Shown: piece after piece, positions 46,832 to 54,008 of the stretch | Layout of the letters: each line of letters begins with the position of its first letter | Numbering within the stretch: position 1 is the stretch's first letter | Origin: Phaeosaccion multiseriatum | Lineage: Eukaryota > Protista > Ochrophyta, other classes | DNA length: 64,000 nt | Assembly (NCBI GenBank): GCA_965112735.1 | Contig: OZ218957.1 | Coordinates: 1,240,001 to 1,304,000, forward strand | Reading direction: 5' to 3' | Notes under the pieces: model-generated | Seen by the model: only the letters and a program-made list of their open reading frames with translations | Database searches by the model: none | Told to the model about the DNA's origin: nothing | Program-made: the position numbers and the translations under genes

Positions 46832-49274
46832 TTAGCACTGCTCCTCAAGCGCAATGAGCTTGTCCACGCCATCAATCATGGTCTGGATGAGCTCCACCTC
46901 GGAGAAGCCGATGCGCGCCTTGTTGGAGATGTCGAACTCGCCGTTGGGGCCGGGGGGAGAGTGCTCTCCCTTGGCGCCACGAGCCTGACAAGGTTTGGTT
47001 GTGGGAGGAAGCAGACTTTCCGAGTGAGCACATACGCGTGGACTGACTGAGTGACTGAGTGAGTGGGTGGGGGGTGGGTGGGTGAGTGACTGGCTGACTG
47101 ACTGGCTGACTGGCTGACTGGCTGACTGGCTGACTGGCTGACTGGCTGACTGGCTGACTGGCTGACGGACGGACTGACTGCTTTACTGACTGACTATTAA
47201 CTGACTGACTGACTGACTGACTGCTTGACTGATTATTGACTGACTGACTGACTGACTGACTGACTGACTGACTGACTGACTGACTGACTGACTGACTGAC
47301 TGACTGACTGACTGACTGACTGACTGACTGACTGACTGACTGACTGACTGACTGACTGACTGACTGACTGACTGACTGACTGACTGATTGATTCACCTGC
47401 ACTCCGAGGCTGTCGCAGTGCGCCTCGAGCTTGTGCACTCCCCAGGCCTTGTACAGCTTGGGCAGCTTGAGCATCACAGAGGCGCGCAGGCCGGTGCCCC
47501 TGAGAAGAAGGAAGCACGTGCATACACACACAGAGAGAGAGAGGGAGTGAAATGGTGAGTGAGGGGTATTGTGCGGCGAGGCGGCTCTCATTCAATGGGT
47601 GACACGTTCGGGCGGCCGGCAGACGCTGCTCCACGACCATTCACTCGACTCACAGGTTGGAGGGGCAGCACGTGACGTTCCCAAGGTGCTCGTCGTACAT
47701 GTACTCCATGCCCTGCCCCTTGATGGAGCCCTCCACCGCCACAATGGCGGCGGCCCAGCGGGCAAACACCTCCTTCACGTTGCCGCCCTGCTGCATGGAG
47801 ATGACGCGCATGTGATCTTCTTCGTTCACCCACACAAGGAAGTTCTTGGCCTCGTTGTGGAAGATGCCGCGTCCGTCGGGCCAGTCACGGCCGGCGCCGC
47901 AGTTGGCCAGCACGTTGCGGGGGGAGGGTTTCTGGGGTGTAGGAGAACGAAGGAGGGAGGAAGTAAGCGAAGTGCATTACCGTACTTGTGCGGTGCCCCT
48001 TCCTTCTACTGTGCCCCTTCCTCCCCCTCTCGTCTTTTGCCCTTACCTGGAACAGGAAGTGGTCATCACTGAGGAGCAAGAAAGAGAGGGGGGCAGGGAG
48101 GATGGAGGCGGCATGAGAGAGGGTGACAGGCGGGCCAAGAGAAGAAAGGCAGTGTGGCACTCACATGAGCTGCTGCTCCTCCTCGGGGGTCATGGCTACC
48201 AAAGGGTAGTACTTTCCCTTGAGCTCGCCCGTCAGACCGAACAGGCCTGTCCATCATCACATCCGTAGGGGGGGCGGTGAAGCATTTAGCGCTGGTAAGA
48301 AATGGAAGAAGAAAAAAAACCCTGTAGAGAGACTCACCAGTCTTGATGAGCGACTCGACCTTCCTGCGCTGACCGCGGTTGGTGCCGGGGGGAAGGGGCA
48401 GTCCTCGGATAGAACGGCCTGCGCGGATGCGGGTGGACACGACGTACTTGTCGAACTTCTCCGCCTGCTCCGCCGTCATCTTGATGTTGTTGGGGTCAAT
48501 GTCGATCTTGTGCTTGTCCGTGGGCTTGTATCCTGAAAGACAGACCGGAGACACAGAACAAAGGAAACCAAAAGCATCTCGTTAGGAAAGCACCAAAGCC
48601 AGAGACCTGTCTCCCACTCTCTACCATGAGCACCACACACACTCACCGTGCCATCCCTCGATGACCTTGTCGTACACCTCCTTGAAGGCCGCGTAGGACT
48701 CCTCGTCGCCGGCGACGATGCCGACCCCCAGATGAGGGGCATCGATGCCCGCCTGGATGGCCTGGTCGAAGGTGAATCCCCCCGGAGTCTTGACGTTGCA
48801 ATACTTGGAGTACAGCGAGGGGTCGTCTCTCAGCACCTTGGCCATGAGCGACTTGTGCTTGTCGGTGAGAATGGGGAAGTTGGACACAGGGTCCACGGCC
48901 TCCACCTTCTTCTCCTGGACGCCGAGGTCTGCCTCGATACCCTTGACCGTGCTGAGGATGCTCTCGAGCATGCCAGACGTGTTAGTTTCGGCCGAGACCT
49001 TCTTCTTCTGCACAGCAGTCTGTGCAGGAGGAGAGGAGAAAGCAGGAGCGAGCGAGCGAGCGATACAAGGACAGAAGAGTGGGGCGGGGTTAGTTTCGTT
49101 GACTGAGGTCTGATGCAGCCCGTGCCGGGGCAATGTTACTCTGGCACGCAATTTCTCTGCCTCCTTCCCCTCCTCTTGTCGCTTGCTTACCATGGCAGAC
49201 ACGGCTGCGACCGACAGCAAAGCAGCCGAAGCTCCGAACAGAGGCTTAGAGAACGCATTCCTGAAGGCGGCCAT
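46832..49274 (-). CDS. Phosphagen (ATP:guanido) kinase with N-terminal targeting extension
   Basis: 'KHKSLMAK', '[32 protein letters not shown]', '[10 protein letters not shown]', '[26 protein letters not shown]', 'CPSNLGTG', '[19 protein letters not shown]'. Confidence 0.95.
47040..47392. repeat. Long (TGAC)n / (TGGCTGAC)n microsatellite filling the last intron of the phosphagen kinase
   Basis: Near-perfect TGAC array at about 47237-47385, with an 8-bp variant array at about 47087-47165. Confidence 0.97.
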
Positions 49275-49511: not shown

Positions 49512-51783
49512 ATGGAGGCTCCAGAAGAGGAAAACCATGGGTTCAGAGAGCGCCTTCGAGAGAAACAGGTACACGCTCCTTGAGGGTGGCTCGCATTGCT
49601 CATTCCGCAATCCCGCACGCCAAACATTCTCTCGGTGGACAAAATAGGGTCCCTTTTTCCTTTGATATCGTCATTTCTCCTGCTCAGGATGAGCTCAAGG
49701 CCCTTCAGCTCAGTGTCCAGAGCAAGTTGGGAATGGAACTAACAGGGCCTCTTGTCATCCCCTCTTCCTCAGGATGAGCTCAAGGCCCTCCAGTTCAGCT
49801 ACGATGAGTTCTTGGCCTCATCTCGGGAGCTGGAGGAGGAGCTGGAGAAGGAGCTTGAGCAGGCGCAGCAGCGCGTATCGGCACTGGCAGACGAGGTAAG
49901 GGTGAAAAGCACATGTAGGGATACAAAGGAGGCTGGGTTTTCCCTTACGACAAACGCGTGCTTTATACCGTGTATCGTACTCTGCAGAACGCCGACTTGA
50001 CGGTGAAGCTTGAGGAGAGCCAGGCCAAGTTCCGCTCACACACCGCAGAGTCGGCGGCTCTCCAGGATGAGACCAGCCGCCTCAAGACGCTCACTCATGG
50101 CCTGGACAAGGATAAGCACCGCCTCGAGCAGGACACCGACCGCCTCGAGGAGAAGGTGCGCATCCTGGAAGCCTCGGAGGATGTGCTGCGGCACCAGCTG
50201 GACGGCGCCATCGAGGAGAAGATCTTCCTTCAGAACGATCTCGAGGACTTGGACGCGAAGCTACAGCACAGCGAACAGGAGCTCCGCAGCCAGGTGGCTG
50301 ACTTGCAGCAGGAGCTTGCCGTCGCGACTCTGACCGCCACCGCCGCTGACGACAAGCGGCAACAGCAGGAGGAGGAGGAGGAGGCTTTGGGAGAACGGCC
50401 CACCATTTCTTTAGTGGCGAACGGATCGCCCGCCGCACTACTGAGCCCCCGCGGTTTTACGAATGAAGCTGAGGAGCTGATTCAGGCCCTGGAGGAGGAG
50501 GTGGAGCTGCTCACGCAGGAGTTGGAGGACGAAAAGAACCTCACCAGAGAACTTACCACCCACAAGCCGGAAGCAGCCGAGGGAGCTGAGCAAGAGCTGA
50601 CAGGCGTAGAGCGAGTTGCCGCCCAGAACCGCAAATTAGAGAAGGAGCTGGAGCAGCTCAGGGAGATGAATGAGGAGATGGAAAAGGCCTGTGATGACGC
50701 TGCGGATGAAGTGATGGAGAAGAACCAGGAGCAGGCTGCAGTGGAGGAGACGCTGCAGGAGAGGGAACAGGAGCTCGAGGTGGCCAGAGCGCTCCTGAAG
50801 ACTCACGAGGACAAGGTAAACCTTCTTGTAGTGTTCTGTTTGTTTGTTTGGTTGGTTGGTTGTTTGTTTGTTTGTTTGTTTGGGGCTCTCACCAACTGCA
50901 ATGTCATTCATGTGTCGATCGAAAGGTTGCACAAGTAGAGGGCCAAAAAGTGGCAGTCGAGGCCATGGTGGAGGACCTTCACGCGGAGCTCAACGAGAAG
51001 AGCGGCAAAGTAGCAGAGCTGCAGGTCAGTGAGTCATTTAGTCAGTCAATGAGTCAGGCAGTGAGTCAAGGCAGTCAGTGACTCAGTGACGCAGTTACTC
51101 AAGTCTGTCCATCGGTCAAAGCAAGCGCCCTCCATCCAACCTCCCACACCTGGTTCTCCTGCCCCCGTGTCACCGCCGTCGTCACCAATCAGTCCTTGGT
51201 GGACGGGCTGCAGTCCAAGCTGACGGCCTCGCAGAGGAGCTTGGAAGAGGCCCGAGACAGCTTGGAAGAGGAGGCAGCCAAGGTAGAGCAACTCACACAC
51301 CTACCATCAGCACTGCCTTCAGTAGCCACGACAGCAGAGGAGGTGCATCAGCATCCGAGCGAAGAGGATCAGCAAGGAGAGGGGCAGCATACCGGAGAGC
51401 TCTCGCCGGACTCTTCGTCGACGGAGTCGTCTTCGCCGTCGTCGAAGCCCGGTGCGGTGTCTCCTCCAATTCCGGTGTCTCCCATTCCTTCGGCCATGCT
51501 GGATCTTCTCCGCTCAGAGGCCGCAGCGCTCAGCAGTGAAGCCGTGGATCTGGACATATCACTGGACGTGGACTCGTCCGTCCTTACAGAGGGGGTAGAG
51601 GGGGAGGGTGGGGAAGAGGCGGATACCGAGGCGTTGCGAGAGGAAGTGAAGCGTCTTCGGAGAATGCACACCGAGCAGCGGACGGCCAATGCGCAGCTCC
51701 TCGTCAAAGTGCAGGTCTGTGTGTGTGTCTCTGTGTGTGTGTGGCATGACTCTCCCAACCAGCATGTTGACAACCTCCAACAC

Positions 51784-51817
<34 letters not shown>

Positions 51818-53801
51818 GTGTGTGTATCTGTCTGTCTCTTTGTGTGCAGGGCCTCCGAGGGAGCATCAACGTCCTATGCCGCATTCGCCCCCCCACCAAG
51901 GGGGAGGTAGAGGCCCAGGCCAAAGTGGCGGTGGAGGCGCTGGGGATGAATGAGGTGAGACTTGCTTGTCTGAGGAGCAAGCAGAGCACACATCGCAAAC
52001 ACCCACGCACAAATCTCACGCTTCACACGCCCCCTTGCACATGCACGGTTCGGCACGGCAGGTGGGTATCTGGGACAAGCATGCCAAGAAGTGGAAGAGT
52101 CTGGTGATGGACAGAGTGTTGGGTCCCGAAGCCCAACAGAGAGACGTGTTTGCCGAGCTGGAGCCTCTGGCGTTGTCGGCAGTGGACTGTCACAGCGCAT
52201 GCATCCTCGCCTACGGGCAGACGGGCAGCGGTAAGTCGGTGAACAAGTGTGTGTAAGGTGAAAGAGGGGTTCACTGCTGAATCAAAGCGCCCCTTCCCCC
52301 TTCCCCTCCCTGTATGAGAGTAGGCAAAACGTACACCATGATGGGTCGGTCCGTGAGCGGGCAGTACGGCATCTCGTACAGGGTGCTCCACAAGCTGTTT
52401 GATGTGTTGAACCTCAAGGCAGCCGAGCAGGCGTACGCGAGTGCGCAGGGCCAGGCGGAGCAATGGCACACATATACAGTGAGGGTGGCGATGATGGAGA
52501 TTTACAACGAGGAGGTGAGGGACCTGCTCGTGCCGAGTGCTAGTACGGGGGGCAACAACAACAACAACAACAACAACAGCAGTAGCAGTAGCAAGAAGCT
52601 GGACATTCGCAAGGGCAACCACGGCATGATGGAAGTGCCCGGCCTGAGCTTCGAGCAGGTCAACGGCTTGCAGGACGTGATGCGGGTGCTGCAGAGGGGG
52701 AGCGACTCGAGAGCAGTGGCCAAGACAGATGTGCACGACGACTCGTCCCGCAGCCATTCCATACTCATGGTGGAGGTGGTGAGAACCACGACACAGATAA
52801 AGAACGCAGCTGAGGCGGGAGGTGCTGGTGCAGGGCAAGGGGAAGAAGGGGGTGAAACAGAGGAGGAAACGGGGCGGCTCTTCCTGGTAGACCTTGCCGG
52901 GTCGGAACGGGTCAAAAAGTCCGGTGTGACTGGTGCCGAGCTGAAAGAAGCTACGCACATAAACACTTCACTGTCGGCGCTGGGGGATGTGATGCAAGCC
53001 CTCGACAGCAAGGCCAAGCACATTCCCTATCGGAATTCAAAGCTCACCTATCTGCTGCAGGACGCGCTGGGCGGGGGCGCTTGTGCGCGAACGGCAATGG
53101 TGGTGACTGTGTGCCCCACCGAGCTGACCTTGGAGGAGAGTACCTTTACGCTGCAGTTCGCCAACAGGGTACGGCACATTGAGTTGGGCAAGGGGGCACA
53201 GCGCAACGTGCAGGACAAGAATTTGGCCGAGGAAGTACAGCGCCTCAAGGCCTTGGCGAGGGAGGTGGCAAGGGAAAAGGAGGTGGCGGAGAGCGGGTTG
53301 GTGAGCTTACAGCGAGAGCACAAGCGCAGTCAAGCCAAGATGAGCTCTCTACTCGACACGCGGAGTAGGAGCGTGCAGGAGCTGCGCAAAACCACGGAGG
53401 GGGAGCGGGCCTCTCTGCGAGCACAGCTGGAGGACGCACAGAGCAAGCTCGTGGCGGAGAGGCAGGGAAAGAGCAAGGTATTGGGCGACAGAGAGGAGAT
53501 GAGTCGGCAGATTAGCAGACTCACACTCAAACTGGAGGTAGCCGACCGTACGAGGGAGGAGGGGCGGCAACGGGTAGCCGAGAAGGACTCAGAGATATCC
53601 CAGCTTCGGGCGGAGTTGCGGGCCACACGCGCCGAGGTCAGGGACGTCAAGAGATCGACTTCGTCTCCGGCGAAGCGGCCTTTGCTCAGCAAGAAGGGGC
53701 CGCCACAGCACCAGCAGCTGCAGGGGAGTAGGCTGAGGCCGGGGGGGAGGATCGGAGGAGGGTTGCCCAGCACCACGAGCGAGGGTGTGGGGGGCGGCCA
53801 G

Positions 53802-53832
<31 letters not shown>

Positions 53833-54008
53833 GAGGAGGAGCAGGAGGAGCAGGTGCAGGAGTAGGGGGGACGGGAGGGACGATACGGAGGCCGTCGGCG
53901 AGTCAGGTGCGGCCGCCCTCTGCAGGGGAGCGGAGACAAGCGGCACTGGACAGGCACCACGAGAGAATGCGGAAGATCCACGAAGCTCGAGCGGACAGGG
54001 AAAAATGA
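49512..54008 (+). CDS. Kinesin-14-type motor with N-terminal NudE/NDEL1-like coiled-coil domain
   Basis: In-frame exons 49512-49568, 49773-49894, 49989-50815, 50926-51024, 51193-51714, 51850-51954, ~52062-52230, ~52324-54008. Neck 'LRGSINVLCRIRP', P-loop AYGQTGSGKTYTM, SSRSH, LVDLAGSER, HIPYRNSKLTYLLQDALGG. Confidence 0.9.

Follow-up and report, generated by a model that had tools for sequence, protein, structure and literature searches.

The window analyzed here, a 64,000-nucleotide (nt) stretch of the Phaeosaccion multiseriatum genome assembly (contig OZ218957.1, positions 1,240,001 to 1,304,000), carries at positions 49512-54008 of its plus strand a gene whose eight exons join into a single open frame of 1195 codons plus a stop codon. 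The encoded protein carries a NudE-like domain near its N-terminus (amino acids (aa) 9-174), from which a long stalk leads to a kinesin-14 neck and a complete motor, and it ends in a C-terminal tail of 272 aa. Stalk and linker occupy ~350 aa between the NudE-like domain and the neck. Cytoplasmic dynein has NudE and LIS1 among its central regulators, and kinesin-14 stands beside it as the other main minus-end motor in the spindle. Each of the two components found in this protein is already known, and the novelty lies in their combination, a subfamily of kinesin-14 with a NudE domain as its tail.

All eight exons are bordered by GT-AG; introns 1-6 are in phase 0, and intron 7, in phase 1, interrupts the codons of the P-loop. 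Exon 1 (49512..49568, plus strand, as are all features of this gene) supplies the start codon and aa 1-19, and its join to exon 2 aligns with the N-termini of orthologues. The NudE-like coiled coil is divided between exon 2 (49773..49895; aa 20-60, phase 0, corresponding approximately to NDEL1 residues 28-68) and exon 3 (49988..50815; aa 61-336), which continues into the stalk. Exon 4 (50926..51024; aa 337-369, phase 0) is entirely stalk, and exon 5 (51193..51714; aa 370-543) encodes coiled coil, a Ser/Pro-rich linker and a pre-neck helix (aa 515-543) that is kept in orthologues. The neck and the beginning of the motor are located in exon 6 (51850..51954; aa 544-578), further motor sequence with the first half of the P-loop in exon 7 (52062..52230; aa 579-634), and the remaining motor (to ~53189), a C-terminal coiled coil, a low-complexity tail and the stop codon in exon 8 (52324..54008; aa 635-1195). 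An initial annotation of this DNA had proposed the splice chain 50815>50926>51193>51850, and we recovered the identical junctions, with one open frame and GT-AG throughout. Furthermore, four full-length orthologues align collinearly with the protein, conserved blocks flank every exon junction and no large indels occur there. Introns 3 (50816-50925), 4 (51025-51192) and 5 (51715-51849) consist mostly of short tandem motifs (TTTG/TTGG, CAGTGA/GTCA-type and GT runs). Retention of intron 5 would add 45 Cys/Val-rich residues directly before the neck.

The resemblance to NudE is evident at several levels of comparison. A PDB search with the initial 114 aa of exon 3 gives NDEL1 as its best match (2v71, E 1e-4), in a collinear alignment of 98 residues with one gap, and NDEL1 2v66 and NDE1 7e1t are matched as well. 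A family profile built from 19 orthologue N-termini and the two window exons matches NDEL1 2v71 over its whole length (profile positions 5-170) at E 1.5e-23, and its best unrelated PDB match is found at E 6.9e-6. A similar profile, searched against 5.8 billion proteins, retrieved three canonical animal NudE/NDEL1 proteins at E 1e-25 to 7.5e-17, together with a fourth match that is a truncated fragment of the NudE-kinesin family itself. All three canonical proteins (P0194-P0196) carry the Pfam NUDE_C domain (E 1e-34 to 1e-42), a region that lies outside the query.

An alternative is that the match reflects chance coiled-coil composition in an ordinary long-stalk kinesin-14. Consistent with this alternative, Pfam and NCBIfam scans of single non-motor exons returned only weak generic coiled-coil matches (SMC, ATG16, BicD and similar), ESM Atlas searched with exon 3 returned generic coiled-coil clusters only, and a search of the PDB with exon 2 alone, a piece too short for the purpose, did not match NudE. 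A protein homologue search with exon 3 likewise gave no match within the 152-483 aa range. As a composition control, we built a model from the three canonical animal NudE N-termini and scored against it the window protein and 2000 shuffles. The spliced aa 1-190 scored 45.7 bits (match at aa 9-174), three further coiled-coil segments of this protein scored -3.8, 7.5 and -0.9 bits, and the best of the shuffles reached 5.1 bits. These controls refute a chance coiled-coil resemblance, against which also speak the 17 orders of magnitude by which NDEL1 precedes the best unrelated coiled coil and the presence of NUDE_C in database matches to a query that lacks it. We consider it next to inconceivable that composition is the explanation.

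The sequence strings quoted in the initial annotation are all present, namely S-S-R-E-L-E (within aa 35-47), R-L-E-Q...K-V-R, A-I-E-E-K-I-F-L (at aa 134), D-L-Q-Q-E-L-A-V (aa 165-172) and the kinesin neck. One of the outcomes it had named beforehand as fatal to its proposal, an N-terminus that scores only as generic coiled coil, is not what emerged from the searches, since the matches obtained are specific to NudE. Given the profile matches to NDEL1 and to NUDE_C-bearing proteins, together with the composition controls, the window N-terminus is by homology criteria a true and NudE-specific relative of the NudE/NDEL1 coiled coil. A second motif, E-A-E-E-L-I-Q-A-L-E-E-E-V-E-L-L (50465..50524; aa 220-239), lies ~45 aa past the NudE domain in the aligned orthologues and in the family consensus, with an almost invariant Leu at its center. 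This I-x-x-L-E-E-E-V-E-L-type element is absent from canonical NudE and is specific to the family.

At the other end of the fusion, the Pfam kinesin motor (PF00225) is recognized in exon 8 at E 1e-72, and the catalytic motifs are intact, including the P-loop G-Q-T-G-S-G-K-T, which straddles the exon 7/8 junction, switch I S-S-R-S-H (52743-52760) and switch II D-L-A-G-S-E (52890-52910). The best PDB match of exon 8 is KIFC3 (E 8.8e-45), which the full motor of an orthologue matches at E 5.9e-82, and two KCBP chains follow, ahead of kinesin-1, -2 and -5. By this ranking of PDB matches, the motor groups with kinesin-14. The neck G-L-R-G-S-I-N-V-L-C-R-I-R-P-P (aa 544-558), located directly N-terminal of the motor and behind a conserved coiled-coil helix, aligns with the orthologue pattern G-N-I-x-V-x-C-R-x-R-P. 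Thus, the complete motor with a kinesin-14 neck that had been read from the sequence at the outset is borne out.

Behind the motor lie a conserved coiled coil and a basic region of low complexity, and the extreme C-terminus is formed by a short motif (A-L-x-x-H-x-x-R-M; 53931..54005) that is present in the family consensus and matched no known family. Of the four orthologues, the Chrysoparadoxa protein and two metagenome proteins align with this basic motif, and the Pythium oligandrum protein does not. Two inserts in surface loops of the motor are absent from all four aligned orthologues. One is an Asn8-Ser5 run encoded by AAC/AGC repeats (52554-52592), and the other is a Gly/Ala/Glu-rich segment of 21 aa that precedes switch II (52806-52868).

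Exon 8 was searched against 1.84 billion cluster representatives. The best matches are proteins of 1000-1600 aa with the motor at the same relative position. Among the 46 representatives in which the P-loop is preceded by more than 450 aa, 26 have a NudE-like domain at approximately aa 5-185. The layout is shared by at least 26 cluster representatives, with pairwise identity no higher than 50%. The closest member is Chrysoparadoxa australica CAM9662521.1 (50% identity to exon 8), and other named members come from Pythium oligandrum (TMW56683.1), Aphanomyces euteiches, A. cochlioides, Saprolegnia parasitica (SPRG_05262) and, as MMETSP transcriptome proteins, the diatoms Odontella aurita, Rhizosolenia setigera and Dactyliosolen fragilissimus. 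The initial annotation had suggested looking for the same architecture among ochrophytes and oomycetes, and it is found in both. Several of the diatom members each derive from a single assembled MMETSP transcript; for example, the Dactyliosolen contig of 4275 nt holds one open reading frame (ORF) of 1285 aa. These single transcripts and the collinear orthologues substantiate the claim that a NudE domain and a kinesin-14 motor are united in one polypeptide. A search with the full-length family alignment was dominated by the coiled-coil kinesins CENP-E and unc-104, and added only the Saprolegnia parasitica protein and two others.

In a maximum-likelihood tree of 82 motor domains, all 26 NudE-bearing proteins fall into one clade (SH-aLRT 97), in which the remaining sequences are for the most part models that are short at the N-terminus or truncated. 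The first split of the clade separates the named oomycetes from all others, including the named ochrophytes. Because a single supported clade holds every NudE-bearing protein and divides first in this manner, the tree fits a single fusion that would predate the divergence of oomycetes and ochrophytes. As judged from these comparisons, the join between NudE and kinesin is real and old, and is conserved across stramenopiles. There are three long clade members in which no NudE domain was detected. One of these, the Helicotheca model, starts at an internal Met just past the domain. In the other two, P0015 and P0024, the domain seems to have been lost or to have diverged past detection.

Members of the family are named ‘kinesin motor domain-containing’ or ‘hypothetical’ in databases, and several bear the automatic JGI name ‘kinesin family protein C2/C3’. 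The Pfam NudE model covers only the C-terminal half of NudE, which is absent in family members, and this is probably why the domain has been overlooked. A literature search, for which most subscription journals were outside coverage, found no published description of a NudE-kinesin-14 architecture, in agreement with the earlier remark that no characterized fusion was known. As far as we could find, this subfamily is both unannotated and undescribed.

Could the locus instead comprise two genes that have been wrongly joined, one for a NudE-like protein of ~360 aa and another for a separate kinesin that begins at the Met codon of exon 4? Read-through of intron 3 to the stop codon at 50936-50938 (ORF 49958-50938) would indeed give a product of the length of a NudE-like protein, the intergenic spacers in this region are short (238 bp upstream and ~90 bp downstream of the gene), and the locus is known here from genomic contigs alone. 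However, intron 5 is 135 nt long, a multiple of three, and has no in-frame stop, so that exons 5 and 6 share one ORF (51196-52107) even if unspliced, and a separation into two genes is possible only at the junctions of exons 3/4 and 4/5. Exons 4 and 5 align with the continuous ORFs of orthologues and show no large indel at their junctions, and introns 3-5 are short, of microsatellite type and canonical in their GT-AG borders. Moreover, single diatom transcripts hold both domains, and the motor tree places the join as ancestral to the lineage. We therefore regard two separate genes as a very improbable account of this locus, although a slightly less remote one than chance coiled-coil resemblance.

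Some additional features of the locus merit description. The acceptor of intron 1, together with the opening 26 nt of exon 2, has a duplicate copy on the plus strand at 49677..49713, which is 85 nt upstream of the productive acceptor and forms with it a 37-nt direct repeat of 89% identity (within 49677-49798). If spliced, this upstream copy would cause a frameshift leading to a stop at 49775-49777 (ORF 49580-49777), and so it is possibly a decoy or regulatory acceptor. The gene is flanked by a divergent minus-strand gene upstream and a convergent gene downstream, across the two short spacers noted above. The divergent neighbor (48624-49274, minus strand, start at 49274) carries an ATP:guanido phosphotransferase N-terminal domain (Pfam E 9.5e-24) of the creatine/arginine kinase type, possibly with a targeting peptide ahead of the domain.

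In egg extract, NDEL1 residues 8-192 are both necessary and sufficient for aster focusing (Zylkiewicz et al., PMC3101096). The same work reported that the E48A/E52A mutant loses dynein binding, and that the E119A/R130A mutations abolish LIS1 binding in pull-downs (PMC3101096). In a 2022 review, the LIS1 pair appears as E116/R127 (PMC9041303), and we take these to be the same residues because the 11-residue spacing and the sequence context agree. In the window protein, the motif S-S-R-E-L-E-E-E-L-E-K-E-L (49818..49856; aa 35-47) aligns E40 and E44 with NDEL1 E48 and E52. Similarly, the segment R-L-E-Q...K-V-R-I (50120..50164; aa 105-119) aligns E107 and R118 with NDEL1 E119 and R130, and the two window residues lie 11 residues apart, as they do in NDEL1.

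These assignments extend to the family as a whole. By alignment of 21 representatives, 20 have E at the position equivalent to E48, 20 have E or D at that equivalent to E52, and the E and the R of the LIS1 pair are each present in 20. We also examined an alignment of 18 full-length members with ~30% mean identity, from which the window protein was left out. Besides Met1, exactly five columns before the neck are invariant, and these correspond to NDEL1 S44, E48, L51, E119 and R130. Such invariance would be expected if the binding surfaces were under selection, and would be surprising in a domain that merely extends the stalk. The proposed tie between a kinesin and the dynein-LIS1 system is strengthened by the fact that the residues required for binding in NDEL1 (PMC3101096) are also those that the family holds invariant.

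Taken together, these observations make it likely, in our estimation, that this one gene encodes a homodimeric kinesin-14 in which a NudE/NDEL1 tail serves as the cargo-binding end for LIS1 and/or dynein. The binding itself, the direction of movement and the cellular role we infer from the sequence. The distal N-terminal tail would constitute a two-part scaffold, offering the acidic patch equivalent to E48/E52 as a site for the dynein intermediate chain and the pair equivalent to E119/R130 as a site for LIS1. The geometry of such a molecule fits, because the NudE coiled coil and the kinesin-14 stalk are both parallel dimers, which would place two NudE helices at the tip and two motor heads at the base. 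Through its NudE tip, a microtubule-bound and probably minus-end-directed kinesin would carry LIS1 and/or cytoplasmic dynein-1, which would couple the two motor systems, for instance at the spindle poles or at other minus-end structures. Canonical cytoplasmic dynein-1 is kept in at least diatoms (PMC2239267).

Several observations weigh against this proposal. First, the family lacks the NUDE_C region, which in animals carries regulatory and further dynein-binding sites. Pfam PF04880 was not matched in the window exons (E up to 1), in any of five orthologues scanned at full length (E up to 0.01) or in two 330-aa orthologue N-termini (E up to 0.1). Second, the subclade of P0015 and P0024 belongs to the family and has no detectable NudE domain, which indicates that the module can be lost. 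Third, the window protein has Ser in its neck (51859-51861, in G-S-I-N-V) where most members have Asn (G-N-I-x-V), and the equivalent Asn in Ncd matters for the direction of movement. Fourth, the four public sequencing runs that contain the locus hold genomic contigs from one sample, with introns present and no intron joints, and so splicing in Phaeosaccion multiseriatum itself rests on homology.

Some of these same observations could indicate that the join is real but that the NudE coiled coil has been repurposed, either as a dimerizing stalk tip or as a site for some other partner, and no longer engages LIS1 or dynein. The missing NUDE_C, the loss of the domain in one subclade, the low overall identity to animal NudE and the deletion of 4 or 11 residues between the dynein- and LIS1-binding regions relative to NDEL1 are all compatible with this alternative. 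A mere stalk, however, would not be expected to hold E48, E119 and R130 invariant amid drift to ~30% identity. Mutant work indicates that these are surface-exposed binding residues and not core heptad positions (PMC3101096). We therefore judge repurposing to be rather unlikely, and favor a NudE tail that has retained LIS1 and/or dynein as its cargo.

More tentatively, we speculate that the kinesin-borne copy might be the main or only NudE of stramenopiles. A kinesin-14 would then deliver LIS1 to cytoplasmic dynein, and the two motors would form one inbuilt complex for the focusing or transport of microtubule minus ends. A search that reached proteins of 182-578 aa retrieved no free stramenopile NudE, its matches being animal NudE proteins and a single truncated family member, although with 8000 candidates scored this is weak evidence. 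We doubt that this stronger version is correct, but if it were, stramenopiles would solve dynein activation differently from animals and fungi, whose NudE is a free scaffold. More generally, a natural join of a LIS1/dynein scaffold to a kinesin-14 would show that both systems can be wired together directly. The family also provides an entry point to mitosis and nuclear positioning in diatoms, relatives of brown algae and oomycete pathogens, in which dynein regulation is almost unstudied.

The relationship of this family to known systems can be described from three sides. With NudE, NDE1 and NDEL1 (2v71, 2v66 and 7e1t) it shares a homologous coiled coil of ~170 aa at the extreme N-terminus, along with the S-R-E-L-E acidic patch, the LIS1 pair and the A-I-E-x-x-x-F-L and D-L-x-x-E-L blocks. 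Unlike these proteins, family members have no NUDE_C half and have 4 or 11 fewer residues between the two binding regions than NDEL1. The three canonical NudE proteins retrieved are free proteins of roughly 300-350 aa, whereas here NudE forms the tail of a kinesin of 1000-1600 aa.

Among kinesin-14 proteins, the closest relatives are in the KIFC2/KIFC3 and KCBP groups, with KIFC3 and KCBP having the closest motors, and the neck is likewise located N-terminal of the motor. The tails of known kinesin-14 proteins carry a second microtubule-binding region (Ncd and HSET) or MyTH4-FERM or CH domains (plant KCBP and KCH). In the present family, by contrast, the N-terminal tail is a NudE domain, and the motor is followed by a conserved coiled-coil and basic tail of ~270 aa.

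Finally, non-covalent complexes of kinesins with dynein regulators are known, including kinesin-1 with LIS1, NDEL1 and dynein in neurons and Kip2 with Pac1-dynein in yeast. What these complexes would have in common with the family described here is the association of a kinesin with a LIS1/NudE/dynein module, which in our case is predicted. The kinesin-1 and Kip2 complexes use plus-end kinesins that carry dynein outward by means of separate adaptors, whereas in the stramenopile proteins the putative adaptor is part of the kinesin chain itself, and that kinesin belongs to a minus-end class.

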